In this document: one piece after another, positions 9,001 through 54,789 of the stretch
Position numbering within the stretch: the stretch's first letter is position 1
Layout: each line of letters opens with the position of its first letter
From: Paragordius varius
Lineage: Eukaryota; Animalia; Nematomorpha
Length of the DNA: 64,000 nucleotides
Direction: 5' to 3'
NCBI GenBank assembly: GCA_964247055.1
Contig: OZ176055.1
Span: 7,688,001 to 7,752,000 of the forward strand
The notes under the pieces: generated by a model
What the model saw: only the letters and a program-made list of their open reading frames with translations
Told to the model about the DNA's origin: nothing
Database searches by the model: none
Translations under genes and position numbers: made by a program

Positions 9001-9934
9001 TATTTCAGATTTACTGTTAAAATGATAGTATATATCAGAAAATGCAAAAAACTCGAGTGGCAGAAAAATTTGTTGTCCAGTGTTATAATATGGACTAAAC
9101 ATTTTTTAGATTATTGCTGTTAAAATATTAATACTAGCAAAACGCTACCTGATGCTTTTTCAACAATTCATTGACATGTGAAGTTCTAACCATCCTCCCT
9201 GTTCGAATTGAAGATCCGTTTTCGGCCAATTCGTCATCGGTTTCTGCTGGATCGGTCGAAATACATCCAGTGTCTGCGCCACTCACATTTTCATGCACTA
9301 GCGAACGTTCTGTGAGAGAATATAATACTTTATGTAAAAATGAATTTAAACAGACAAAATGTAAAAACTTAAAGAGACAAATATTTTTTTCACACCCATA
9401 CTTTTTAAACCTTATTTTTTAGACCTAATCGTTTTGGGTTTAATGTACTCACTTTTTCGTTTCACGATTGTAATTATATGGTTTATGTAGGAAATGCTAA
9501 GTTCAAAAGGTATGGTTATCTTTTTTTTAAAAAATATATATCTGTTATTTTTTAAGTTTTGTCCGTATAATTTAAATTTGGGTATTATTTATTATGTTAT
9601 TGATTATAAAGTGTTTTTTTGTGCAGTGAATAATAATTTAAATTAAAACCATTTTTATAAACATTATCATTGGCTAAATGTACAAGTGGTACAGCGTCTT
9701 TCCCATCATAACAATCATATGAAGTAGATGTCATACAATCCTCACAAGATATACGTTCAAAACTTAGGACACCATAAATGTCAGTGCTTAGTAAGTAATC
9801 TTGTTTTGACATATGATGGTGTTGTTCAGGAGAAGTCAGGGTAATTGTAAGTTGGTGCTGTTGCTTAGACCATAAAGCAAGAGCTTTAGCATTGTTAAAC
9901 ATTGGGACGTCGCCACAAAAAGGTCGTTCTGAAA

Positions 9935-9978
<44 letters not shown>

Positions 9979-12900
9979 GATACAATCAAAAGCCTTAACA
10001 AGCTTAGTAAGTAAGTAAGATAAAAAAATTAATCTCTCGCGTACCTGAGATAAATTGATGAAGGCCACGGCCAAACGCTTGTAACCCATCAAAGCTTTAG
10101 ACTTGTAATGTTTTCGCCTTTGTAACATAATACACAATTTATTGCAGCTAGTGTTGTTCCCAACCGTTACAACGTTGCCGACATTGTTTTTGTTGTAATG
10201 ATTATACTATAATAAAAATAAATCATAAATTTATTGTTTAAATTAGATAATTTAATTTCAATTTTTTTTGAATTCTAGTATCTCATATTTTACAAGTGTT
10301 ATTTTGTGACGATGCCATAAAAAATTAAGCAAAAATTTTTTAAATGTAAAACAACAGTATAATTTTATAAATTTTTGTGGATATATGAGGATTAATAAAT
10401 GTCCTTGTTGGTCAAATTCCATTTTTCATTTAAAGTTAAATACAAATGTACCATTTTAAACCTAATTTTTGTTTTTTATTTTCAACAACTACACTGCCGA
10501 AATGACATAATTACATTTTATTGTCAAATAAATTAAAATATTATCTTGTAAGCCGAAAAGCGACAATTGTAGAACACTATATAGTATAGTAAAGAATGTT
10601 AAACTTCAAAGATGAAAGTACACCAAAATAATTTTATGGCCATAGCATAATTATTATACATAAGTCATTTTATTTCAACCACTATTTTTTTATTCCAAAA
10701 AGTTTTTTTGTTTTACAAATAAAATTTTGAATTTACCAGTATCTTTCGTATTTTGTTTTTGACTTATTTAATTGTGTTTCGTCTTGTTTTAGCGTATAAT
10801 TAACTTATATTACTCATAAAAATGGCCGGTAAAAATTAATATTTTAAAAACATCAGATATTTTAGGTTAGGATTATATAGCAAAAAAATGCATCAATCCA
10901 TATTCATTTTAAAAGAGTGATTAGCCTTTATTATTAATATCATAATATGGGTGCGCAAAATTTCTATTATTATAAATTTAACATGGCAGCTCATTATAAA
11001 ATCCGCGTGTAATAAAGTGTTATAATTAAATAATATATCATTTACAATTCAAATTCATCCTTGAACAATTCAAATTCACCCTCAAATAAATAATATGTTT
11101 TTTAGGATTAAAAATTACCTATATTTTTATATATTCTCAAAAAATAAAATTGTGTTTAAAATTATAATAGTACTGAAGAAAAAATAATAAACTATGCCAT
11201 AACGATATGTTTCACATGAGTTTTATTAGTCGAAAACACATAATTGTTTTTAGGGTGAATTTGAATTGTTCAAGGGTGAATTTGAACTGTAAATGGTATA
11301 TAAAGTTGTCCATACAAATTCATTTCTTATAAAATTAGTGTGAGGCCAGGCTTGGGATCATTAATCCTATATCAGTGGTACTCACCCAAAAAAATTGAAG
11401 AATCAACCAAAAATATTTTTTGCCCCCCAAGCGCCATACATAAGGTCGATAAAAATTTCATAGCTGTTTGATATATTTGCAAACATTTATACTCCAAATA
11501 AAAAATATAATAAATAATTCTGAGCCATTAAAAATACACTTTTAAAGCCGCATGAGGCATATGGGTCCGCGATTATATGGTTATTTTTTAAATAGCTAGG
11601 AATATAGGATTCTATGTTTTGAGTTATTTTAACACAGTAGCCTTTTTTATTTCATTATATTTTTTTTATTATTTGTTACCGCATATAAACAAGTTTAATC
11701 GATTATTTAAAGAGATAAAATTGATAAATAACCCAATTTGCATAATTGATACCTGCACAAAATATTTAAAAAAATATAAGGTAAATATTAAGATACAAAT
11801 AATATATTTATTTTGTAGCATATATGATGCAATTGTAAATGAGTTTATTATGACGAAATATGAATGACAAATACAAAGTGTAACACAAAAATTAAAGAAT
11901 ATTTAATTTACCTCAAAACAGAATTTAAGATTTAACGGAATTTCTTGTTGTCCTTCTAGGAGGTGGGGGTGATAATTATCATTTTGAGAATGATAATACG
12001 CATTTTCTTCAATACCTTTGGGTGTAGTTTTAACATCTCGGCCCATCATTGGATTAACATTGAAAGCTTGTGAACGAATTATGCGTTTAGAACCCTAAAG
12101 GAAAAATTAAAGTGTATTGATTTTAAATTCATGTCAATACAGTGAAATCTATGGTATTTTTTTAGATAAAATCTGACGCTCTTAAAAGCAATCAATTATT
12201 TAGGGGCATAACCAGTCAATTTATATTTAAACTTCAGAGTAGACTAGGTATCAATCATAAGTTGACACGGCGAACATATTCGGATATAAATAATGAATAT
12301 ATTTAATGAACTAAACAACAAAATTTATTTATTTTATGTTTGATTGCAGCCATTTGTAGTTTTTTTCTTATACGCTACTGTGTATGCAAAATGAGTAAAC
12401 TTTCATTTAATTTTTCCCCCGTCGCCTATAAAAGTATTCTATACTTGTATACTTCTTAATTTTTACGATTCAAATACAATCTATAACTTTAATTAAACAT
12501 GACCCTAAAATTCACCAAATAAATAAAAAAAAATTATATTTAAAAAGAACAAAGATATGATAAAAATTATAAATTCTTATCACTGTTTTTTGTAATTCAT
12601 GATTTAAACCGGATAAAATATTTATAACATATAAATTGACAAACGGCGAGACCAATTAGACATCAACATATTATATGCTTGCTTATTTTTTGATAATGAA
12701 ATGAATCACGAGGCGATGCAAAGAACTACTTTATAAATCCAAAAAAAAATTTATCAAATATTTATTAAATCATAACACAAGACATTTCAAAAAAATCCTA
12801 TAATATTTTTCAAATACACTAACGCAAATTCCAAGTGAATGGAACAAAAATCATTAGTTGTATTTAATAAAACGATAGCTTATATAAATGAAATTTCCAA

Positions 12901-20534: not shown

Positions 20535-21485
20535 ATGCAGATTACATCAGGTACTGGGCTGGTGAAAATAACTGCTGGAGTTGTTGGTGCATTATTTGTT
20601 GGATATTGTTTTTATTTTGATAAAAAGCGGCGCAGCCATCCGGATTTTAAACGAAAATTACGCGAAAGTTTTTTAAATTTTATTGTTTAGAAAGGGCTAA
20701 ACAACGACAGATATTAGAAAATGGTAATGGCCTTGATATACCAGATATTCACGATCATGAAGCTATGCAGAAATTCTTTTTGCAAGAGATAACCAAAGGA
20801 GAGGAACTTATGATGCTTGGTTTATATTTCTTATACTATTATTCTTTATTGATATGATCCATCATTTAAACAATATTTTGTACAGGTGATATTGATTCCG
20901 GAATCGAACATTTAAGTTATGCGGTGGCTATATGTTCACAGCGGGAACAATTGCTTGGCGTGTTGGAGAGAACACTTCCTCCACAAATTTTTATCATGTT
21001 AGTTCAAAAATTACCACAAGCTCAAAAAGTTAATATATAGTTTGTTTTCTTAACCAAAGATATCTAGTACCCGTTGTGTTAAACCTTTTTCACGGATTTT
21101 AATCTAATATATATGTTTATTTTATGTTATTATGCTATAAATTACTGTTGAATATAATTTATTTTATAGACTGGTTAAACTGTTATATGCTTATTTTAAA
21201 TTATTATAAAGCTTTTTTTAATACCGATATCTGAGTTAACAAATGTTTAATACTTGGGTAAAATGTTTTTTGTATTCAACACACTTTTTTGCAAGTGGGT
21301 GCAAATTTGAAATTAATTATTAGTTTACGATATTTTTTTACCTATAGAAAATATTTGGAAAACTTTCTCCCACTGGTAATGCAAATACTAGTCTCAATGC
21401 TAAATTTTCACCGTTGGACATTGAAGAAAAATTGATTATGGATTCTCCAACGATACCCATTATATCTGAGGAGGATGTAGATTAA
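20535..21485 (+). CDS. TOMM20: Mitochondrial import receptor subunit TOM20
   Basis: Exons 20535-20667, 20691-20819, 20886-21028, 21348-21485 (introns 23, 66, 319 nt). Product MQITSGTGLVKITAGVVGALFVGYCFYFDKKRRSHPDFKRKLREKRAKQRQ...EAMQKFFLQEITKGEELMMLGDIDSGIEHLSYAVAICSQREQLLGVLERTLPPQIF...ISEEDVD* has the GYCxYFDxKRRSxPxF, QKFFLxEI and TLPPxxF motifs and the acidic C-terminus. Confidence 0.97.
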
Positions 21486-25300: not shown

Positions 25301-27277
25301 CCAACCGAAAGATTTTGTCCATGACCAATTACGAAAAATTGACCTTGCGTTTCTGTTGGCGGCCGCTTGTTAGATGTAGAAACATCCTTCAAAATTAGCC
25401 ACCAAAGATATTTAGGGGCTGGATTGGCGTCGGCCCAGCAGCTCTGGAAAAAGGCCCCATCTCTCAGCACATGGATTTGGTTTGGCAATTTAGGTTCTGC
25501 AAGGATCGGAGCGTCTATTATATTAATTAGGTTTATAATACATTCTCATAAAAAATAGACCATTCACAACTCAAATTCCCCCCTGGTTCCAAACATTTCA
25601 AATTCTCTCCTTGAACATTTAAAATTCACCCTAAAAACAGAGTATGTGTTTTGGGGTTAATCTATCTTAGTATGATATCAAATATTTTTGTATGGCATAG
25701 TTTGTCATATTTTTTTGTATAATGTTAATTTCAAAAACTAGTTTTTTGAATATATCATCAATATATAAAGGTATTTTTTGATTTCCAACATTTTAATTAG
25801 TTTTTAAGGTAAATTCGAAATGTTTAATAATGAATTTAAAGTCAATAATAAATTTGAAGTCTAAATGGTTTATATATAGTCATATATATATATTTACATT
25901 TAATGTCTAGTAACAATGATGTAGCCCATTCTTTAACTTCGGTAGATTTTTGATTCTCAGCATCAATTTTATTTGCTATCTCATTAGAGTCTTGTTGTGT
26001 AATTTGATTTATTTTCTGTAGCGCTTTGCACCAAATAACCTTACCATTATGCCTTCTACCCAAACCCGTTATTTTGAGAAACGTGGTTATAGTTTGAGTT
26101 TGATTTTCTCCATGCATATAGTTGGCTTCGGTATTACCTGAAATGCGTGAATGAGGAGGGTAAGGGATGGATAACTTTGGTATAATTTGAGTTTCTAGAT
26201 CAGGATCAGTTTCCCACACAAGTTGTCCAAACGGGATTCCGGCTTTAGCCCTACAAGCTAATTCTAATTCCATCAATGTTTTATGTTGATTGATTCCAAC
26301 GCCATCATTTTCATTTTGTGTGTCATTGGGGGCATTCTTTTGTCCTTGTAGCGACGGGGTTTCTAACGGAGGCAAAACTAAGCTGATTACGGTTGACTTA
26401 ACTAATTTTTTGTTGCGTACATCATCGACCGGTCGACTATTACTTAATGGCACGACGAAATGGTTTACACTATTTAATGAATATCTTGATGGGACTTTGT
26501 AAGCTGTTATGAGTGGATTATCGCTCGGGACTAGATAAAACATGTCACAAATCATTTTATAACAACACAATTTGTAATACTTAAAAAATTAAAATATAAA
26601 CACAAATGAGAGATATTAATATACTTACCCATTTCCACCAACCTAACGGGTTGCGAAAAATATCCCAACGAATTCAATCGCACATTCTTACGTAAACCAC
26701 AAAAGTATAGCCCTTCATCCGAATGAGATGCATTTTTTATGTTTAGTGTAAATTTGCTGGAAACGTTAGCAATTAAAGATGTAAGACTCGTTTTGTTAGT
26801 TTTAATTTGGATTGGGTGTATATCGTTTCGATCCTTAGTGTTCACAGACATGTGCATAAAATTGGAATTTAAATCATGACCCGTATATTGATATGAGTTT
26901 ATGCTCCAAAATAGATTGGAAAATATCACTGGTTCTAACGTTGCTGTTCTCTCCGCATTGTCAAGGATTATGGAGTCAGTAATTATTTTGGTTGATAATT
27001 TTACGGGTAATTCACAATTTATGGTGATATTTTGACCAGCCTTAAAATACAATGTTTCAACAACAGATTTTTCTTTATCATTAAGCATGTTGTTGACCGT
27101 GGTGACTTGGTAATATTGATCCTCATTAGTTGGATATAAATTGTTTAAATGTCCCTTCGATATTGTTTGCAATACAGGATTACTAAGTGGAATGGAAAAA
27201 ACACCACCAGGGCATAAACAGATACTTGTTAGCAAGAGTAAAAGTAATTTCATATTAATAAATCGTTGGGCCATCAT
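22352..27277 (-). CDS. Immunoglobulin-superfamily single-pass cell-adhesion protein (3 Ig domains; Kirrel/nectin/CADM-like architecture), ~969 aa
   Basis: Phase-consistent exons 27277-26629, 26530-25898, 25514-25044, 24857-24609, 24528-24438, 24161-23879, 22885-22352. Signal peptide (MKLLLLLLTSICLC), V-type Ig (GQNITINC..FTLNIKNASHSDEGLYFCG), C2-type Ig (LELACRAKAGIPFGQLVWET..HNGKVIWCKA), third Ig (KYAP..SCWADANPAPKYLWW..IMCEAYNEFG), TM (ILLTSAFCVLCLILTLMVFIFYTMFI), long cytoplasmic tail ending PTSV*. Confidence 0.88.
25560..25850. mobile_element. Diverged MITE family A copy in Ig-gene intron 2
   Basis: accattcacaactcaaattc...aaattcaccctaaaa and internal tatggcatagttt shared with the other copies; right TIR decayed. 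Confidence 0.55.
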
Positions 27278-37340: not shown

Positions 37341-40300
37341 TCAACATTCTGTTCCCAATATGTATTCATGTTTATAATCGTATTTGTAATTGAAATCGAA
37401 ATCATAGTATTGTTCGTAAAAAAAGATCAAATATGTTGCAGCCATTTCTTTCCAATTAGTTATGTCTACGTGGAAAAAGAGAAGACGTCACAATCAAGAT
37501 TAGGTCTAGCCCGGTTATGAATGCAATTCCGACTGTGACCGCTCTTAAAAATAACCTAATATCATGGTATTAACTAAATTTTAAAATACCACAATTTTAT
37601 TAATTGTCATTAATATTTCTACAATATCAAATGTAAGACTTTTTGTTAATCATCGAAACTATAAACTCTTACGCTGCTAATAAACTGCTTATGACTATGA
37701 ATTACTGCATTCTCAAGCATCAGACCGGTTTTTATATTACCACAACTAATACTATACAACTAAAACTCCAACTTTTAAAATTTAGCGAGGTATAATTGAA
37801 ATTGGTTAATATTTCTCGCATAAGCTCCACATCCATTGGTACTTGAACAGCTTTCCGGTCTACGCGATATCGCCAAGGGATAACATGGTAAATGTTGCTA
37901 TAATCTAATGTCACATATATTTATATATATTATTGTCATAAGCTAGTATCATACTTATTTTTAAAATAAATATAGAGTGTTTTTTCATATTTTAGTGTGC
38001 TTTACCATTTTACAAAGCTAAATGAAAACGGGGTGGACATGAACTATAATTTTATTTTTTGCTTATTAGCTACTTACTACGTTTTATTACCGATTTACAT
38101 TATTTTTACTAATAATAATTATAATTTTACTCAAATATATAAATTTTCTTCTGTAAAATATCATATTCATATGTATTTACCTATGATCCAATACATTATG
38201 AATCCAACCAATACAGCGAACGTAATTGCCATCATTATGATAACTCCAATCCGAACGCTATTTATTTCAGCCGTTAACATATGACAATCTAAAAAATGAA
38301 AATTATGTTTCTCATTCTTACAAATAAAATTTACCTCTGATTTTATGAATACTAATATCATTTTCCCGTAACTCCATCCACCGATAATACTGAATATGAG
38401 GGAAATGTAACAAGATTAATTTTTTTAAATCATCAGACACGTCTTTTTGAACGCCATAGATGTGTATATTATAAATATGTGTTGCGTTATCCTGTCTAAA
38501 AATGCCCTATAAAAATGTTGGGAAACTTGATTGGTTCCAAGATTGGGGGTGTTTTAATGTGTGTTTTAAGTTTATTTCTTATCTGAGAATTTAAATCGAT
38601 TTAAACCATGTATTCAATATAACTGCTAGTGTATTGTGATTCAATCATTTCGTATGTATAATAGATAAAAAACGGTCGAATTTCCAATCGATATACACAA
38701 TCAGCATCATCTATAAGTAAATTAAGGCATAATAATTCTTAAAATATTTACAATTTTGACCGTTTTTCCCATTAAATGAAGTAGACCGATTTCCCATGAT
38801 ATTTAATCTGCTTAATGTAGCAAGAAAACGCATATTTTGCAAAATAATATGGAACTTTTTCGCCCCACTTTTTTTCTTTTTGTTATGCATATAATCTGAT
38901 AATACGTTTAGTATAGAACCTAGATTGCTTTTTTATGTGTAAACTATAATTTATTTGATTACTAAAGTGTAAGATACCGATTACTAATATCATTCATTAT
39001 ATTGTATTAACGAAAATTTAATGGAATACGCTTAAAAATAACAGCTAAGTAGCACTTTTATTTGATCCTTTGAGCATTAGAGTCAATTTTATCCTTTAAA
39101 ACTTGGGTGTCCCACACGCTTTGTTCGGTATGCCAAAAGCGCTCTAAAGAATGTTAAAAAATAAAAAATTGGAAAAAATTTAGGATTTTTAAGAAGAAAT
39201 ATCTTTCCGAAATCGGCCTTAAAATATATTAAAAAAGGTATATGAATATTTCAATTTGAGAAGTATTAATGCAAGTTTAAGATATTATAACTCGATCAAA
39301 TGTGTAGGACATGCAATTTTTAAGGATGGAAAAAATTTAGAGCTTTCTTTAATATTATCATAGGTTTTGAATATCCTTATCCAAAAGTTAAGAATAATTT
39401 TATATTTTTATAATAAATTGTTTATTATTGATTCAAACTTAATTCTAATGCGGAATTGACATAGTAGGGTTTTCACGCTCCCCTTTTCTCTTTAATACTT
39501 GATAAGCTATAGCAATAGTAGCTCTTTAAAAAGTAGAAATAAAAATAGCCATTTATCCAACCAACCTCAACACTCTTTCATCCAAACTCAACACACACTT
39601 TTTCATTCAAACGTTTCGTTGATTACCAAATAGAGCTTTATTAAAAAATTATTAAACATTAAAGAACTCAATAAACATATCGCTTAATATTTAATTTTAG
39701 TTTTTTGCATTCAAATAGTTTTATCTAAATTCGCTTTAGTAAATTAATGAAATAGAAATTATATTTTAACGGAAAAATTTTATATTTTTGCAATTTTATT
39801 AATTAATATTAAATAAAAAACATCAAGATTTATAATAGTTGAAAGTTTAAAATGATGTATGAAAAAAAAGTATTTACATATCAACAGATTTTTTTTGGAA
39901 GTCATTTTTGTTATTCTTCATAAGAAATCTGGATTTTTTTGTATTATAAATGCGTCTAAGAATGTTGGAATCGGAACCGAACTGATACTTAAAAATTTTA
40001 AATACACCCGGTTTTCAATATTTATACAGAATTATGTTGGCTTTGATCTATTAGATATAATTTCTAAGAGGAACCATGGGGTTTAGGATATGTAGACCCT
40101 TCTACATGAACTACTCATTTAACGCATAAAATTAAGAAAATCTAATATTATGTAGTTGTATCCAAATATGAACATATTCCATACCTGTACAAACAGTCTT
40201 AGCCGAAAGATCAATTGAACATTGACAACGATAATCAACACATTTGCTGAATTGGGACACAAATTCACAATCTTGATCATTATTACAAGATTCATCATTG

Positions 40301-43300
40301 TAGTATGCTATTGATAAATGTAAAGCATGTGAATTTATGTTTTGTCTCCTTACAGTCAAAATAAATCACAATAATTATGATTGTATTTTCTCGTAATTGA
40401 ATTACAGAAAACTTACTAAATAATTGGCTGTTGCTATATATATAATAATGCCCAGTCACGCGACGTCGAAATAAGCACTGTCACGCATCTCTTCTTAATC
40501 GAAGAAGGAGTCATGGAAATTGGGTTCACATTTTTTTATTTATTTGGTGCAATTAATAATAATAATAATAATAGTTATTATTTCTTTAACTTGATGAACA
40601 TCCTTATATGTAAATTTTGCTAGGTCCAATTTAGATTGAGGGATTCATAACACTCCTTAATATTTAAGTAATAGTATGGTAAACCTATATTTAAAATAGA
40701 TAATTTCGCACAACCTTTATTTTATAATAAAATCTCTATGTTATATGTCCTCGCACATAGAACCAAAATACAATATTAATTATTTGATATATTGGCCGGT
40801 TAAAGCTTTATATACATACATTATTGTATAAATTTTTCATTTCATATTATTTTAAGCCCAAAATTATATTTTTAAATACATTGATGTTTTGTCGTTTTTA
40901 GTCCAGCTTTCAGCGCAACATAACATTATAAGAAAATATTAATAAATGAAATTCCTTTTGTTAGTTTGATATCAGGAGTTTTCCATAAAATTTTGTTGTA
41001 TTTAACATTTGTTGTTCTCTTTATCATTATTATTAGAAACTTAATAGAAACATGTATTGGATATTTAAGTATTTGGGTTTCTAATACTTTTGATAAATAT
41101 TGTGTTAGCGAATTTCACACAATTTTCGAAACAATGGTATGCCAACTTTCCGCATTTGACTGCAAAATGATTAAAAAATCATTTAACTGGATAATCAAGA
41201 TATCCTATGACTATGAGGAATGTGATTTACCCAGCAATATTGAGCCTGTATCTATTGTTGATTTTCTCAAAATACTTTTTAAACATTCATGGGTGAATGA
41301 ATACAACTTTGGCATAATTTTTTAACATTTGGATTGCTAGTGGTGATAGATATTTTAAGTATATAAGGTGAAGACTGTATGATTATTGATTTGTAGGCGT
41401 GAATACGTAGTCAAAGAGAAGACGCGAAAGGTACTCAGCCGATTAATTAAGCATATTTGACCCAATGATCATGCGAATTTTGTGCCTTAAAGAAATTTCA
41501 TGGTACCCGCTTTTCTTAATCATCAAAAGAAAAAGGCGAAGCCATCGTTTGCTAGTGGAAACATTACATAAACGTGCATCGATTAATGCAAAAAAAATTT
41601 TGGAAATTTAAAAATGATTTTATTGTAAAGAGATTTGCAGAATCATGACATATATCACAAAAACATCAACAGGCAATGATCAATAATCTCAATGAGTCAC
41701 ATGCATAATAAACACGATAAAGTGTCTCTTTTTTAGATTCAAATCGGTAAATATTGTGGTTTTCACCTATCCTAGCCGAGTCCATTAACCAAAAACACCC
41801 ATATCATTTCGGCAAGACTATGCTCTGTGTCTCTTATGGAACCTGATCAATATCAATATTACTAACTTTAAAAGCCCCTTTAAATTGTTATTGCACATCG
41901 CCGTCGCCGTTATTTTTATTTAAAACATGGCCTTAATAAAAATGGCAGCAATGGGCTTAACGGCATCTCTAATAAATTTCGCTACAGGACAATGCTCGTC
42001 ACACAGCAAAACTAGTGCGTTTTGAAATCACTTAAACATTTAATTCATTAGCATCCACCGTACTCCTGGCCCAAAGCCAACTAGTACCATTCAGCACCAA
42101 TAAATCGCTCGAAGAACATTACTATAATAATATCGAAAACGTTGGAAAATGATGATGCATGGTTTGCCCCAAAAAATAATCAGCTTCTAAGGCATGGCAT
42201 TTATATATATGAGAGATAGGCGCATAATGTAGAATCCTCCAGAAAGTATTTTGAATAAAACTAATATTTGAATCCCCTTCAATGCATGTTTTATGATTCC
42301 TTATCTATATAGAAATGGAAAGTGGTGGCTTTGTGATCTGTTTCCGGAAAACCGGTAGACCCATTCAAATCCAAATATCGAAAAAATATAATCATTAACG
42401 AATGTCCCGACAATAGCTTCGCCCTTTTTAATTAGGCCTCCAGTTCGGGCCCACCCCGTGTAAAAAACGGTTTTTTTGAAAACAGAAATTTACAAAATCG
42501 TGTCTTTGAGACAATTTTCCGAAAAACGTGTTGGACGATTCGCTTTTAAATATGATTTTTTTTACTTATTTTCGAGTGTCCGAACATAGTGGGCTCGCTT
42601 TTTTGATTTAGGCCCTCTTTTTAGCCGTTCCTCCCATAAAAAGCCATTTCGAATTGCCCACAAAAATAATTTTTTGAATCTATTTTCCCCAATGGTATGA
42701 GACAATAAAAATTCATTAGCATTCCAGGTATTACCTTTTAAAAGGCAAAAATTTTAATCATGCGTTTCCTTTATATTGGCTGCTGAGTAAGGAGATACCC
42801 GCTAAAAACTGCCCCGTCATATCGAAATAGCGTGCCTTTGGGGCTAAATTTCAGAAAATTTATCATGCCATATGAGTTCAATAGCTGCTTAAAATATTAC
42901 CCGTATCAAAGCAAAAATTTAGGTCATGCGATTTTTATAGCCGTTAATTAGGCCCTTCACGCCCTAACTGCGCCACCATAGAATAATTTTTTCGTTTTGA
43001 GGCAATTTTACCGAAAACATATGGATCAATCATGATCAGGTATCTCCGTCAATAGTCAAAAATTTTATTCAAGCGCTCTTTTCCTCTGGTTAGTGAGCTA
43101 CTCACCTAAAACTGCATCACCATATTTAAATTGCGTTGTTTAGGAGTTAATTTTCAGAAAACTTATCTGGCCATATAAGTTTAATAAGGGCCTGAAATAT
43201 TACCCGTAAAAAGGCAAAAATAGTCGAGCGGTTCTTTTTAATTACCCTTTAATTAGGCCCTTGCCTTAAATGCGCCACCATAGAATGACCTTTTGGTTTT

Positions 43301-46300: not shown

Positions 46301-49300
46301 CATTAATGAATATATGTCAATTTATTAACTACAATTTTATTTTCCAACTGAAGACTTGTGTTGTACTTATGCCAGCTTGCAAAATTAAAATAAACCAAAG
46401 AGTAAAATATTTAATTTAATGTGCATTTTGTTTCACCCATATATATATATACAATTATCATAAAAAGGCTTAAAAGCATAAAGTTTTATTATTTATTTGT
46501 AGGTGTAATGTATTGCAATAGATTCACCGTCAATTAATATTTGAATGTATTTATCTTCTTCAATTTATTGTCAGTTTTATTATCCGGAAGAAATTCTATC
46601 ACTCAGAATTATAATTACACATAAATTATTTCTACAGAACATACAACTCCAAAATTTTCATCGACAATTTTATTCCCTAAAAACCATTCTTAAACATCAG
46701 TGGACATATCATACTGATTCTTTGATTCTTATATCTCAATACACCACCACTAAACTAAATTCCTACATGGAAAGCAATAATTCTAAAATAAGCTCCCGTA
46801 ATTTAGAAATAAATATGGCCACCTGGAACACTCGTGGCACTTCAGATAACAAATTGAATATAATAATTCGCGAGATGAAACGTTTAAACATCCATGTGTT
46901 AGGGCTGTCGGAGACTCATATGCAACAACACAAAATATACGACAATTACTCGTTTTATAACTCGGGCGGTGAACTCAAACCAAATAAATGCGGTTTCTTA
47001 ATATCGAATAATCTTGCCAAACATACTGATATATATAGACCTATTTCCGATCGAATTATAGCCCTACGAATTAACACCAGACCCCAGGCTATAACAATAT
47101 ATCAAATCTATGCCCCCACGAGTGTCTCACCCGAAGACGAATGCGAAAAGTTCTATAATGAGTTACAAATGGCTCTCTGTGAAACATCCATGAAAGACAT
47201 AACTTTCATCATCGGCGATTTTAACGCTATCATAGCTAACGATAAAACAGACAAGGTCACTGGTGGAAAAGGCCTTGGTAAAGTCAAAAACCCCCATGGT
47301 GAAAGGCTAATTAATTTTTGCCAACAATCATTCTCTTTATAGCGAACTCGTTTTCAAACAACCTAACAGACGGCTCTACACCTGGACCTGACCGTGTCGT
47401 AAACACAGGAATCAAATATATTACATATTGGGAATGCAATAATACAAGCTCATTTCAAAACATCCGGTGCTACTCGAGTGCATGCAACTCAGATCATAAC
47501 CTATTAATGCCAAAATCAAAATAAAGCTACAACTTCCCCAGCCGCAAAAAAACTTTTCCAAAACTAAATTGAACTACAAACTTATACCTGCCGATTTTAC
47601 GCCAATCCTTAACAAAAATTTGAATCCCTAAAATACGAAACATAGAACACAGATGATCTTTGGTCTACTATTTACAAAATTACCACCGAAACAGCTAAAG
47701 AATATATACCGCCTGCCACAACAAAAAACAAAAATTTTACCATATCACAACAAAGCATCGACCTAATTGTATAGAGAAGAGTAGCAAAATCCAAGGGCAC
47801 TCCCCTTGAGTACAAAAATATTAATAATGAACTACAAAAAAGCATAAGATCCGACAAAAAATCTCATTATAATACAATCTGCGCTAACCTAGAGCAAGCT
47901 GCTAAACTTAATCACAACTACTTCTCTTATATTAAAGGCATTCAACCGCGCAAAAAACAAATGTACAAAGGTCCTATGTCTCATTCAAACGGAAAACTTC
48001 TAACCGATAAAAAAGGAGTAATTAAACTCTGGGAAGAATACATCCAAAATTTATTCTCAAAAATCAAATACAATCGCCATGAACTCTAAACAAACTTATG
48101 ACCCACCTATACTAAAAGAAGAAATTGAATAGGCCCTGAAGCATTCATCAACCGGCAAAGCAGAAGGATTCAATGATATCCCTACCGAGTTACAACGGCA
48201 CATTCCCTTAAAATTAATTCCTTCGTTATTTCAAAAAATCTTCAATGAGGCAACATTCCCGACGGACTGGAACAAATCACTAGTGGTCCCTATATTCAAA
48301 AAGGGCGATCCTAAACTATGTAAAAACTACCGTACAATAGCATTGATTTAGAGAAAAAAAAGGATGCCGAGACATGATTTCAAACCTTAGATGGATAATG
48401 GAAAAAAACTGTGAATTCCAAAATGAGCTACACCTATGTTTCGTGGATTTCTCTAAAGCCTTTGATACCGTTTAACATGACATTCTCTGGAAGGCCCTTA
48501 AATAAATAGGATCCGATCACTTAATCAAACTAATTAAATCCATATACTCCAACTCCTACCTATCACTTAACACCCCGCATGGCTCGACCTCTTGGAGCCC
48601 AATTAACATAGGTCTGCGTCAAGGCTGCATTTTATCCCCCATGTTGTTCAACATATATTTGGAATGTATCATAAGGGATCTAAATCTGCCAGGAATAAAA
48701 GTAGGGGATCACACTCTGACGACTCTCCACTAGGCAGACGACACGGTTATCTTAGCAAATTCACAAACAAACCTCGAAAACAGTCTCCGAACTTTTATAA
48801 ATGTGTGCAAAAAAATACAATCTTACATTAAACCTCAACAAAACTAAAATATTGCATATCAACTCCTCTCATTTCTATGACTCGCTTCGGATTAATAACG
48901 GAACAATTCAAGTAGTCAACGAATACACATACCTTGGAAGCATTATCAACAACTCAAGCTCCAGTTCCCAAGAAATAAGAAGACGCATAGCTATCGCCAA
49001 ATGCGCTCTATCCTCACACTGCAAGTTATGGAAATCTCATGACATAACCCTTAAAACAAAAATCCGACTAGTAAATGCATTAATTTTTCTTATCATGTTA
49101 TACGGATGTGAAAGCTGGACTATCAAAAGTGGAGACGAAAAATGAATAAACGCTTTAATGTTTTGCTGGAGAAAAATACTTGGTATAACATGGAAGGACC
49201 AAATAAAGGACATCGACATTGTAAATAAAATTAAGGCACAAACAACGCTTCGGGGTAAAATAATAAAACAAAAATTCGTTACTTCGGACACATTATTCGG

Positions 49301-52300
49301 GGCAATTCTTTGGAAATATTATGTTAGGAAAAGTAAATGGTAAGAGAGGAAGAGGATGCAGACGTATTCGCTGGGTAGACGAAATCTTATTTCCAAATTG
49401 TCATTGCAAAAACTATCTCAAAAAGCTCACGACAGAACCGAATGGAGGAAGTTTTCCTACAAAATCGCTAATGGTCGATAACCGACTACAAGCTCAACAA
49501 AAACAACAACAACAACAGGGACCAGTTTCCATTTAATCGATTATTTGGTTTTGTTACCGATTTTTTCTCATCTTCTCTATGACGTTTATTAAATCCTTAA
49601 GTGGGAAAACTTTGCGAAAAGAGATTAATATAGGTAAAATGTAACATATAATCAGATAATATATATTAGGTGTTGTTATTTCGTGTAACATAAATATTTT
49701 AGGCAGGTATTTATTGCTTAATTAATCATGATTATTTTTATAGGCCTTTGCTTTAATTAAACATTAAATTTTAAGGAATATTATTTTAGGTGTTTTGTAC
49801 TGAAAATTTATCAATGTTTTAAAATATTAAAAATTGAATATTGAATAATCTATAAAGGTTTTTTCTATTATGTCAAAATTTAACACATTATTGACTGCCA
49901 AATTATCTTTAAAAGTATTAAAATTTTCGATAATCCATGAAATATGGCGCCAATGCTACAATCCAAATTAGATTGGAACTTTATCGAATGAATTTTAAAA
50001 ATGTTTTTTTTTAATTTTTGTATGCTTTACCACAGAGCTTAAACTTGTAAATAAACCACTATATAAAAGTTGTTTGGATAAAAAATTAATTATATAACAT
50101 TGTTTTCTGCATTTAAAAATTACATATTTTTAGTATATAAATAAATCCAAAATTGAAAGCTTAAAACCCGATTTTAAACAGCTGACAAAATCATAACAAA
50201 TTATTTTTTGCAATGCTTCTGATAATTTTCTAGAACTGATAGCCATAATATATTTTTTTGCGTGCTGTATTAGCGATTAAAAAAATAAAATAAATGTGGC
50301 GAAAAAATTTGATACGAGGATGTTTAAACATTTGACGTGACTCAAATTTTTTTGAATATAGGTGCCTAAACGGATGAAGGATGCAAATTTTAGAACCTGG
50401 CCCAATATTCTGTTATAGTTTCTGGAATTTTTAAATTTAACTCATTTTGGGTATTAACAAAAGGTGATGTAGCCTTTAATGTGATCACCCAGCATATGTT
50501 AAATTTTATAATTGCTTAACAGCTTCTTTGCGTCTATATTATATAACTTTTGCACAATTCAAAAATATGCAAATATGTTTAGTTTTCGAAGTATAATTTA
50601 TAATAAATTTTTTTTATCAATATTAGCCTGTGCTGATATTGTCTAAATCGTGTCTACGAAAATTTTGTAAATATTTTATCAATACTTTATCTTGTGTTTT
50701 AAACTGATGTTAGAATATTAAAAGCGCCAGATTTTAACACTGTATGTGTGTAGAGTTCTAGAATTTTAAAACTTCGCATTTTCCCATCATCACTGTCATT
50801 TAGCCGTGGTCCGAGAGTCTCACACAAGTCCTGTTTAATTTGGGTCTTTACAAAAAGAAAAAGATGTATATTATATTTGTAAACTTTAATATCAATTTTC
50901 ACAAATATCACAAGGCTGAATGTGATTTATATAGGCTTAAGAGCGCAAGGAATTTTTAGATGTGTAATTAAAATGATTTTAAAATTATAAATATAATACC
51001 TAATTTACAGTTTAAAGATGTTTTGTAGGGACATGCACAAAACCCATTTTCACAAAGGTAGGCGCATGAATTTGAATCTTTGCATCGTTTTCCTGGCTGC
51101 TTCATATCTAAAGCTTAAAATTTTATTTTCGTTAGTATGCCAAATTGTGTAAAATTTGGAGTTTAGGCTTTTTTACAAAGTATTAACTTTGTCCAAAAAA
51201 TGAAAAGTAGTTTGAATAATAATTTAAGAAAGATAAACGTTAGCATCTTAATAAAAATATTTTATTTAATTAACGAGCGCATAAGCTTCGAGAAAGTGTA
51301 ATATATATTTTAATTAATTACGATTCATGCCTCTAAACCAGTTCACTAATGATTTAATAATATAATATATATATATATATATATATATTCTGATAGATAT
51401 TTTAATGGTGGCTGTGGTTTTAGACCTTGCGGGTTATATAAGAAAGTTACTTGTGAAATTTGCTGCATTTCAAAAAAATACTCAATCGCAAAATCAGAAA
51501 CAATTTTTTGATGAAAGCTTAATACTTAATTCCTGAAAATATCAATTATACAAAATTTATATTTTACAAATATGCCCTAAAATCCAATTTTTGGACTCGC
51601 TTAAAACGGGCCAGTTTTTAAACTAAAAGCAAACTTGCCAATATTGCGCGTTAAAAATTTTAATCTAACAAATTTTTACATCAAAAAAAGTTATCTTGAT
51701 TTAATGTCCTTAAAAATTTAATTTATAACAAAATTCTGTTGATAGGCGATTTATAATATTTAAAAATATGGTTAAGTTATTAACTTTTTGGATAAAATTT
51801 AATGTTAACGAAATATCTATAACCTCATAATTTAAATTAGAATATGAGTTTATCTATAAATTAAGTTATAAGTTGTGTTTTAAAAAATCATATGATTAGG
51901 TGTTGAATTTAACTTCAAAGAGTTTTTTTATCATAAAGTATTTTTATACCGTATCTATCCTTTAAATTTAATATAATTTCACTTTATCAATTTTTCATAA
52001 ATATATTATGAAAAAAAATTTCGGAAAACACCTTTTTTTGATTTTACCCTATATTAAAATTTTCATTGAACAAAATTTTCGTCTTTATTTAAGAAAACTG
52101 ACCCAATTTAACGGGTAAGAAAATTAGGGACTTTTGGCTCCCACAAGGTATTTAAAATAGATAAATATACTGTTTTGATATTGCATTAAATATTTTATAA
52201 AATTTATAGATAAATTATTTTTTCATAGAGTTTTTATTACTCTGATATATCACAAATGGACATTTGTTGTATATTTTCAGGGAAGACCATTTTTATAAAA

Positions 52301-53967
52301 ATAATGATAAAGAGGGCGCATAATAAAAAATCATATTATACAAAGTTTTTAGGTGGAATTATAATTTTTGTTTTAAAATTCCTGTTAAAATGATGGTTAA
52401 TATCAGAAAATGCAAAAAACTTGAGTGGCAGTAAAATTTGTTGTCTAGTGTAATAGACTTACATTGTTTCAAAACAGTGTGCCAAATTTATAGTCCAAAT
52501 TTAGTTTTTAATTTCGTATTAATTAAGTTAGCAATTTTCAGTACACAAAAATTTAGGGGTCACGTTCCACCTTTGCAAATTATTTGGTATATTAAAATAG
52601 GCTTGTGTTTCAATAGTTTACATTTATTAGGTAAAACGTCTTAATAAATCAGATTTTTTTAATCAAAAAAAGTATTTTATAATTTTTTTTAAAAATCATG
52701 GGTATAGTATTACTTTATTCGAGCTTAGTTTTTTTAGCTTATATACCATTAAATACAACTCCGTTTGTTAACAAAGGTAGGAAAAAAAATATAATTTAAA
52801 TTTAAGCAATATTAAATATTTATATTTTACATGTAATATATACTTTATAAAAAATAATTTTGTAATTTAGTTTGATTTAAACACAACTATTAATTCCATC
52901 CCAGCGAAACATATGTTAAACTGAAATAAAGAAGCTTGTGTCCAACTATGATTTTTTAAATCCCTTAGTAATAATAACCCCCCATAAACAAATTGTTACG
53001 AAATTTTATGAAATTTTAAAATCCAGATTTTCATAATAGAGATTTTTATAAATGTCGGAGCTGATATACAAATTTTCTAAATGCAACCTATCCCTATTTA
53101 TTTTGGCTGAAAACTGGTGAGCTCTATGGGAAAAATATAAAATTAGATGTTTTTGATATCGAATTTGATATATTAAATATAAACGGTGCGACCTGAAACT
53201 GTAGTTTAAATATTTTTTAAGAAAAATAAAAGAATCATGTAATCTTGGTATATTTTTATATCAGAATTATATATATTATATGTATATCATCAAGATATTT
53301 TTTATCTCTCGGTTTTGTGGAATGAATAACCTAAATATCTAATGAATAAATTTTATGGAAAAATATATTGAATCGTTTTTATATGAAATAAAACATTTTC
53401 TCTGATATTGCAAATTCAAAAAATAGTGATCTAAAGATTTACCTTTTGTTAAACAAAGACCATTTACACAATCATAAAAGGTAGGACATTCATAAAATCG
53501 GCAATTTAAAAAGTCTACAAGTTAAAAAAATGGATACGAATGCACTCCTTTGTTTGACATTGACATTTTTTATCACATTTTCCAGTTAGGCATTCTATAT
53601 GGCTTTGACAGGGCGTATTAACATTTTTTTCTAATTTGCCAAATAAAATACATTAAACTATTGGCGCATTCACCATTGATATAATACTGATAAGTATCAC
53701 AAACACAACTATTATTTAAACAATTATTGGTAAGACATTCATAACTTGAAGTACACTTGGAATTATACGGTTTTTCTGAAACTTTAGAGACACAGATATA
53801 CTTGATTGGCAAGTTTGGTTCAGCGAATAAAAATTTTCTTTGCACAAGCATTTATTACCTATTTTCCAATCGCAAATTTCATTTGTTTTGCAATCACTGT
53901 TAAATTGACAGCTAAAAATTATAAATGGTAAGCAAATAAGTAGTGCATAAAAAGATATTGTTAACAT
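37341..53967 (-). CDS. Uncharacterised type I membrane protein with Cys-rich EB/EGF-like modules (~330 aa), interrupted by ultra-short introns and a putative ~13-kb intron
   Basis: Proposed exons 53967-53802, 53775-53659 (or from 53781), 53630-53538, 53514-53443, 40307-40185, 38288-38181, 37904-37831 (or 37843), 37759-37673, 37555-37492, 37465-37341. Signal-like MLTISFYALLICLPFIIFS; modules CQFNSDCKTNEICDWKIGNKCLCKENFYSLNQTC, CTSSYECLTNNCLNNSCVCDTYQYYINGEC, CQSHIECLTGKCDKKCQCQTKEC, CRFYECPTFYDCVNGLC, CNNDQDCEFVSQFSKCVDYRCQCSIDLSAKTVC; TM IGVIIMMAITFAVLVGFIMYWII. All ectodomain introns are phase 1. Linkage of the 53-kb and 37-40-kb blocks and the cytoplasmic exons are less certain. Confidence 0.7.
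41480..42270 (+). pseudogene. Mariner (Mos1-like) transposase relic
   Basis: HFGKTMLCV (~41805), LQDNARHTAK (~41980), HPPYS (~42052), WFAPKN (~42160), RKYFE* (42241-42258), in mariner order with frameshifts; TIRs not confidently identified. Confidence 0.8.
42304..44612 (+). mobile_element. Non-autonomous Helitron, second copy, with five ~310-bp units and a nested MITE
   Basis: A|TCTATATAG 5' end; hairpin CTCGGGCTGC-GTA-GCAGTACGAG (44579-44601) 11 nt before the CTAA|T end; unit motif at ~42791, 43095, 43416, 43728, 44039. Confidence 0.8.
44225..44469. mobile_element. MITE family A copy nested in the Helitron
   Basis: TIRs taccatttacagttcaaattcaccct / gaatttgaattataaatggta; absent from the homologous site of the 34037-37212 copy (taaacaatatattagtatgaa). 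Confidence 0.85.
44670..44960 (-). mobile_element. Possible LTR-retrotransposon integrase-core relic
   Basis: Minus-strand KFCEQTGFRK and SDGLIENQRKSFLRQ resemble the integrase core (FC..LGI.K ... QSDGLVERFNRTL); very decayed. Confidence 0.35.
46500..49517 (+). mobile_element. Near full-length degenerate RTE-clade LINE (AP endonuclease + RT) with (CAA)n tail
   Basis: Endonuclease MATWNTRG..LGLSETH..SDRIIALRI..IYAPTS..IIGDFNA; RT GLRQGCILSPMLFNIYL, ADDTV, YTYLGSII..EIRRRIAIAK, MLYGCESWT, MLGKVNGKRGRG..RIRWVD; tail caacaacaacaaca at 49495-49517; multiple frameshifts. 5' boundary approximate. Confidence 0.93.
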
Positions 53968-54789
53968 ATATAGAATATGAAATTCTATCTTTGTTCATTT
54001 AAACGAGGGATGCCCATCACAAATATCTTCGCGGCTGCTTTAATATTTTTTCGTTTTATTTGTTTTGAGGCGAATTTTGGATGATATATTATCCATATCT
54101 ATGTTTGGCGGATCAAATTGAAAAGGTTTAACTATAGGACAACACCTTGGAGAATTGTCACAGAGATACTTTTTTAAAAAATTCTTATTTTCCCACGGCA
54201 AAAGGTGATAGTAGTCGCGATAATAAATGATTAAAAATCTCTTATAGATGCATATTTTTCTTAAAATATCTCAAAGCCAACATTCTTCTGTATAAGTATG
54301 CAGATGATATTTAAACTTGTATAAAATTTTATTTTTATATTAGTTTTATAATTTACATAATAGTAGTGCCCTTAAGATAAACGAAAGGTCGATATCGGGC
54401 GAAAACTTTAAATTTTTAACAAAAATATTACATTAAAATTTAAAAATAGCTACTTTGCTTTAAAATCAAATTTTGTCATTATTTTATTAAACCGCATTTA
54501 TGCCATATTAAATGCTGATATAAAAACACTTATAAATGTTTAAATATATTTTATAACATATATGGATACTTAAATAATTTTCATAATTTGTTTGTGTATT
54601 TAAGACATATTTTTAATCAAGATACGAAATGAGATAAAAAAAACAGCGACATAAAAATGTTTCTTTAACTTAAAAACAACTTTTTTTAATACTCAAAATA
54701 CCAAAAAACGAGCGAAATTTGCTAAAATTTAAATCTTAAATATGCATTTTTCTAAAAAAAATTTTTGATGTTTTAGTTTATATTTCAAC

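Follow-up and report, generated by a model that had tools for sequence, protein, structure and literature searches.

The window analysed here is the whole 64,000-nt stretch of Paragordius varius DNA. On its minus strand, an ATG at 53967 starts the sequence MLTISFYALLICLPFIIFS..., a hydrophobic, signal-like N-terminus that is followed by a six-cysteine module. We read the minus strand from 54200 to 53300 and then spliced it by script. Excision of three short stretches fuses four overlapping frames into one ORF that is open from 53967 to at least 53443 (149 codons). The first of the four predicted exons (53802–53967) contains the ATG, the signal peptide, and cysteine-rich module 1, and it ends in phase 1; exons 2 (53659–53775) and 3 (53538–53630) are both phase 1-1 and contain modules 2 and 3; and exon 4 (53443–53514) contains module 4 and ends in phase 1. 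The candidate introns that separate them are intron 1 (53776–53801; GTATATCTGTGTCTCTAAAGTTTCAG; 26 nt, GT..CAG), intron 2 (53631–53658; GTTTAATGTATTTTATTTGGCAAATTAG; 28 nt, GT..TAG), and intron 3 (53515–53537; GTATCCATTTTTTTAACTTGTAG; 23 nt, GT..TAG). All three are GT-AG, lie in phase 1, and have lengths that are not multiples of three, and their splice junctions fall exactly at module borders. In the ORF list, a stop is reached after 28, 13, or 7 codons if intron 1, 2, or 3, respectively, is retained.

A first-pass annotation of this DNA had given the coordinates, sequences, and lengths of the three introns; it had described all of them as GT-AG, phase 1, and not divisible by three, and had claimed that their removal leaves a single open frame and that their retention leads to an early stop. 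Re-reading and scripted splicing reproduced that description to the base. Its account of the product as a signal peptide plus four intact modules held for modules 1–3, each of which has six cysteines, and not for module 4, which has four rather than six; the number of cysteines is even in every module.

Exon 4 ends at a strong donor (AAAAG/GTAAAT; last exon base 53443), and if this donor is not used the frame continues to a stop at 53341–53339. The gene probably continues through a 2335-nt, repeat-bearing intron (51108–53442, minus strand), which we placed from a compatible phase-1 donor and acceptor, to a putative fifth module exon at 51107–51000. This exon has six cysteines, an acceptor tttag/AT, and a donor TTAG/GTATTA; it is phase 1-1, matches the Pfam EB profile (E = 0.0027, 18.2 bits), and joins exon 4 in frame (G + AT = GAT). 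The three tiny introns would come first in the gene, with the 2335-nt intron after them. Phase 1-1 holds for all five module exons, two of which have ordinary canonical splice sites.

A very high-copy repeat occupies ~52208–52475, within the putative 2.3-kb intron. The summed depth of X3 contigs (X3 is one of the sequencing runs considered below) reached ~69,000 over the repeat, against ~63 over its single-copy flanks, and the repeat is represented by many variants, some of its sequence being lost in internal deletions. A further EB-like module exon (40185–40307, minus strand; six cysteines, phase 1-1, caatag/CA ... ACAG/GTATGG; Pfam EB E = 0.0013, 19.2 bits) lies on the same strand 10.7 kb downstream of exon 5, and may be part of this gene or of another.

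Several other features were observed in the window. On the minus strand, an exon at 9898–10206 has a match to PF25332 (E = 2.4e-9), the N-terminal C2 domain of PACS sorting proteins; its donor (TCAG/GTACGC) is followed by a (TA)n-bearing stretch of ~116 nt that resembles an ordinary intron, and a homologue search with the PACS-like ORF gave no match. Also on the minus strand, a 241-amino-acid ORF at 26552–27277 has an immunoglobulin V-set match (E = 8.4e-6) and adjoins a 242-amino-acid ORF in another frame, with a canonical GG/GTAAGT donor between them; a homologue search with the V-set ORF found none of similar length. On the plus strand, an endonuclease/exonuclease/phosphatase ORF (46545–47342; PF03372, E = 1.2e-7) precedes fragments with broken frames at 48500–49540 that are reverse transcriptase-like by eye only, and the two probably represent a LINE copy that has decayed. 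The 64,000-nt window gave no match in Rfam or tRNA scans.

The encoded protein

Exon 1 matches the Pfam EB profile (PF01683) over residues 19–53 (profile positions 21–52 of 52; E = 0.0028, 18.1 bits) and exon 2 matches positions 17–52 of 52 (E = 0.0042, 17.6 bits); in both exons, the final position of the profile is reached no more than two residues before the exon ends. The scores of the four separate exon pieces that match EB (17.6–19.2 bits, E 0.001–0.004) are below the Pfam cut-off of 24.3, and only positions 16–52 of the profile are covered, with modules of six cysteines (four in module 4) as against the eight-cysteine EB pattern. As a lead only, the Atlas clusters nearest to exon 2 carry EB, Dumpy-DPY, or EGF families.

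Searches for related sequences were negative within their scope. A homologue search with the 83-amino-acid ORF of the gene gave no match. A search with exon 1 against 1.84 billion representatives returned one spurious tandem-repeat translation (P0001) and no homologue, and so there is no orthologue with which to confirm the junctions. A hidden Markov model of the modules, run against the six-frame translation of the window, recovered only the six modules used to build it, and DNA alignment of exon-plus-intron units found them too diverged to reveal paralogous introns.

EGF-like modules are typically encoded one module per exon, with phase-1 introns between modules. The predicted protein resembles EB module proteins (PF01683) and the class 1-1 module exons of EGF-like proteins in that tandem, small, disulfide-rich modules follow a signal peptide, one per exon, and are separated by phase-1 introns. 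It differs from EB module proteins in that just the C-terminal, six-cysteine part of the eight-cysteine profile is matched, each time below the cut-off, and in that the whole protein has no homologue in our searches. In our reading, the protein is secreted, is specific to its lineage, and is built of EB/EGF-like modules in tandem; from this architecture, our guess is that its role might be in extracellular binding or matrix.

Independent sequencing runs and a 23-nt intron in TOMM20

Contigs from runs X1 and X2 contained 100% of the sampled 31-mers of the locus, and contigs from X3 and X4, which derive from a second specimen, contained 85–90% of them (X3 contained 90% of the words of the gene). 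In the region used for comparison (50600–54600), a 4021-nt X3 contig spans 52402–54600 and covers the gene, from which it differs by two changes only: 53905 T>C, which is synonymous (codon 21, CAA>CAG), and 53651 C>A, which lies inside intron 2. These two single-base changes explain the missing 10% of words, and therefore the gene contains no hidden indel. Two pieces from run X5 (53371–53580 and 53603–53753) cross introns 3 and 2, respectively, without gaps, and a piece from run X6 (53731–53881) crosses intron 1. As the introns have equal lengths in the second-specimen contig and in the X5 and X6 pieces, the assembly deletion or collapse against which the first-pass annotation had cautioned is excluded.

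Runs X5 and X6 are labelled as two other organisms. Within the 50600–54600 region, their pieces (151–211 nt) are identical to the window, have a depth of 2–6, and include both genic and intergenic sequence, which looks like carry-over between libraries or the presence of the organism in those samples. Given this identity, the pieces come from traces of the source organism of the window and not from relatives, and we rejected them as comparative data, since they contain no evolutionary signal.

The window also contains a complete TOMM20 gene of three exons (20535–21040, plus strand; Pfam MAS20). Its exon pieces match MAS20 profile positions 1–31, 56–90, and 94–132 (E = 2.6e-12, 1.2e-4, and 1.8e-8, respectively). 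Fewer than 40 nt separate pieces 1 and 2, whose frames differ, so joining them requires the removal of at most ~40 nt in a length that is not a multiple of three. The pieces join via a 23-nt GT-AG intron (20668–20690; GTTTTTTAAATTTTATTGTTTAG) that is in phase 1 and contains an in-frame stop; in this conserved housekeeping gene, therefore, the same genome requires an intron of 23 nt, which is accompanied by an ordinary short intron, the second of TOMM20 (20820–20885; 66 nt). In Pfam scans of ~40 other ORF segments for conserved genes with tiny introns, TOMM20 alone was usable. The first-pass annotation had proposed that this animal routinely splices such introns: TOMM20 supplies one independent case in the window, and "routinely" leans on that single control.

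We interpret the locus as the 5′ portion of a genuine gene, lineage-specific and coding for a secreted protein that would consist of a signal peptide and tandem six-cysteine EB/EGF-like modules, one per exon. Its first three introns would be of the U2 type, with GT-AG ends and lengths of 26, 28, and 23 nt (20 or 38 nt being less probable lengths for the first), located in phase 1 between modules, and retention of any one of them would give a truncated protein after 7–28 codons. We put the probability of this explanation as a whole at a little under four in five, and hold it likely to the same degree that the three ultra-short introns are real.

Other readings of the frame breaks

For intron 1, there are three frame-restoring options (26 nt; 20 nt, 53782–53801; and 38 nt, 53756–53793), all of which keep every cysteine. 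The first-pass annotation had already listed the 20-nt alternative, with its AG at 53782, and it is indeed present; the 38-nt option (53793–53756) was absent from its list. The 26-nt form has a YAG acceptor, and with it the linker is 9 residues long and carries KK at the splice junction, as is seen at junction 2; junctions 1 and 2 both have the form A/gt...ag/AAAAA, and both give 9-residue linkers containing KK. For intron 2, the 28-nt form is the sole frame-restoring GT-AG solution that retains all cysteines, and for intron 3, the 23-nt form is the sole one within the 38-nt inter-cysteine interval. The first-pass annotation had argued that longer in-frame alternatives for introns 2 and 3 would remove module cysteines, and this was borne out for the 43- and 44-nt forms.

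The choice of three frame-restoring options for intron 1 is compatible with a real gene whose mature mRNA differs from the one that we predict, either because intron 1 is removed as 20 or 38 nt or because modules are skipped as cassette exons; some transcripts would then use longer introns, such as 53801–53631 (171 nt). All of the exons are symmetrical (phase 1-1), and module skipping would therefore keep the frame. However, CAG, with which the 26-nt form ends, is a stronger acceptor than the AAG of the 20- and 38-nt options, and exons 2 and 3 have intact open frames with six cysteines each and must therefore be part of some mRNA. Exons 2 and 3 can be included only via the ultra-short introns, and so alternative splicing does not remove the need for these introns. 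We consider it unlikely that the mature mRNA differs in these ways.

A second explanation is that the locus is a decaying pseudogene, in which a once continuous array of modules has acquired three frameshift mutations and the GT-AG pairs are coincidental. We estimated how often such pairs arise by chance in the intervals from the last cysteine codon of one module to the first cysteine codon of the next (53, 55, and 38 nt), using 20,000 mononucleotide shuffles per interval and scoring as a success any frame-restoring GT-AG pair of at least 15 nt. Successes were obtained in 0.197, 0.244, and 0.047 of cases, which gives a product of 0.0023; with a stricter criterion (GTW...YAG, at least 20 nt) the product was 1.2e-4. 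Between the module cysteines, no solution was longer than 38 nt for intron 1, 28 nt for intron 2, or 23 nt for intron 3. When the whole window was scanned for GT-AG pairs of 15–60 nt that bridge ORFs, the counts were not above those of control dinucleotide pairs, and thus GT-AG alone is weak evidence in this window. Such chance bridging pairs are common in this AT-rich sequence, which is compatible with a pseudogene, as is the lack of a homologue, but the joint probability of 0.0023 for three GT-AG solutions speaks against one.

Absence of the locus from RNA also agrees with a dead gene. Sampled 31-mers of the locus were not found in any of the same-species runs labelled as RNA, and the largest of these runs (X7) had nothing on the gene and, over the locus, two spurious pieces of 34–37 nt only. 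Because the locus is absent from the RNA runs, the excision of the three introns is one that we infer from the sequence and not from transcripts. Several features of the gene nevertheless argue against decay. Each frame break is bridged by a GT-AG pair; the exon frames contain zero stop codons and have lost zero cysteines; and all of the junctions are in phase 1 and between modules. A 149-codon open frame is improbable in sequence of 28% GC, in which ~8% of random codons are stops. The sole exonic difference in the second specimen is the synonymous change in codon 21. Furthermore, the introns of a recently dead copy would still date from a functional parent gene. We regard decay with coincidental GT-AG pairs as quite improbable.

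That small indels or collapsed introns, as artefacts of assembly or sequencing, have created false frame changes has a negligible probability, because X1 and X2 contain all of the sampled words and the X3 contig and the X5 and X6 pieces are gap-free over the introns. We found nothing in favour of such an artefact.

Splice signals and relation to known ultra-short introns

The donors of the tiny introns (GTATAT, GTTTAA, and GTATCC, and GTTTTT in TOMM20) have GTW only in common and are far from the canonical GTAAGT; the donors of the longer introns of the same cysteine-rich gene are GTAAAT and GTATTA. The acceptors of the tiny introns are CAG, TAG, and TAG, and TAG in TOMM20. The tiny introns contain 48% T, compared with 35% in the exons. 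The motif TTTTA occupies intron positions 11–15 in three of the four (intron 2, intron 3, and the 23-nt TOMM20 intron), and intron 1 has A at positions 17–19. This motif was recognized post hoc and is not enriched window-wide (7 matches compared with 4.4 ± 2.1 expected), and three of the seven matches are these introns. TTTTA at positions 11–15 may be a branch-site signal whose position is measured from the 5′ splice site.

We propose that the introns belong to a 20–30-nt class that would be used near the 5′ ends of genes, beside ordinary and kilobase introns. Splicing would probably proceed by intron definition with reduced signals, namely a 5′ GTW and a 3′ YAG whose AG is not preceded by a polypyrimidine tract, and the likely branch adenosine would lie ~15–18 nt from the 5′ splice site.

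Introns under ~30 nt were previously considered to be absent from animals (PMC13644364, Mol Biol Evol, September 2026). A survey of 51 animal genomes found introns shorter than 30 nt only in myxobolid Myxozoa and Dicyema japonicum (median 22–27 nt); both of these lineages have reduced genomes, and hairworms are not mentioned (PMC13644364). In myxobolids and Dicyema, the longer the intron, the farther its conserved A residues lie from the AG (PMC13644364), and the positions of A and of TTTTA in the introns described here fit that pattern, in which the A tracks the 5′ end. The resemblance extends to GT-AG introns of less than 30 nt in an animal, a 5′ signal reduced to GTa or GTw, the lack of a clear polypyrimidine tract, and an A that keeps its distance from the 5′ end and not from the AG (here, in three of four introns, A15 after a T run). 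In contrast, nearly all introns of Dicyema japonicum and the myxobolids are tiny and their genomes are compact, whereas the window examined here is repeat-rich and has, along with its tiny introns, the 66-nt intron of TOMM20 and, probably, a 2.3-kb intron that contains a repeat.

The closest architectural match is provided by the microintrons of flatworms, which have a length peak of ~37 nt in Opisthorchis and are also found in Schistosoma, Echinococcus, and Macrostomum; they are concentrated close to the start of transcription and occur together with introns of 3 kb (PMC6530080). The architecture predicted here would likewise be bimodal, with tiny introns near the 5′ end and a putative kilobase intron after them, and in both systems gene finders at the default minimum intron length would miss the tiny introns. 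The flatworm introns differ in their peak length (~37 nt, compared with 23–28 nt here) and in belonging to another phylum, and they are documented by RNA-seq, whereas ours are predicted from the sequence. Ultra-short introns are also cited, in the animal survey, for Paramecium (~25 nt), Stentor (15–16 nt), the chlorarachniophyte nucleomorph, and Microsporidia (PMC13644364). These share with the present introns the size range, the canonical GT-AG ends, and the disruption of the frame upon retention, but they belong to unicellular organisms in which tiny introns are uniform genome-wide.

The MAS20, PACS C2, immunoglobulin V-set, and EB matches in the window identify its source as an animal. The Gordionus assembly has 26.9% GC and 64% repeats, with which the 28% GC and the repeat load of the window agree. 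Introns are not mentioned in two published hairworm genome reports, of which the Gordionus report is one. The kind of intron is already known, and the lineage seems to be a new one. We lean, with some reserve, towards a broader proposal: that an animal lineage outside the dicyemids and myxozoans has a discrete class of 20–30-nt introns, located at the 5′ ends of genes and between duplicated module exons, in a large, repeat-rich genome that also has kilobase introns, and that the 5′ splice site determines, by distance, where the branch site of these introns lies (a T run and then an A at ~+15).

If this is true, introns can be shortened to the extreme without the genome being compacted, and standard gene finders overlook part of the repertoire of secreted proteins. 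With default minimum intron lengths, aligners and gene finders would split such genes into frameshifted fragments, so the gene sets annotated for genomes of this kind, and their completeness scores, may be underestimates. A third lineage with tiny introns beside kilobase, transposon-filled ones would demonstrate that ~15 nt between the 5′ splice site and the branch point is enough for the animal spliceosome even where the genome as a whole has not been compacted, and such a lineage would be a natural system in which to study the lower size limit of splicing.
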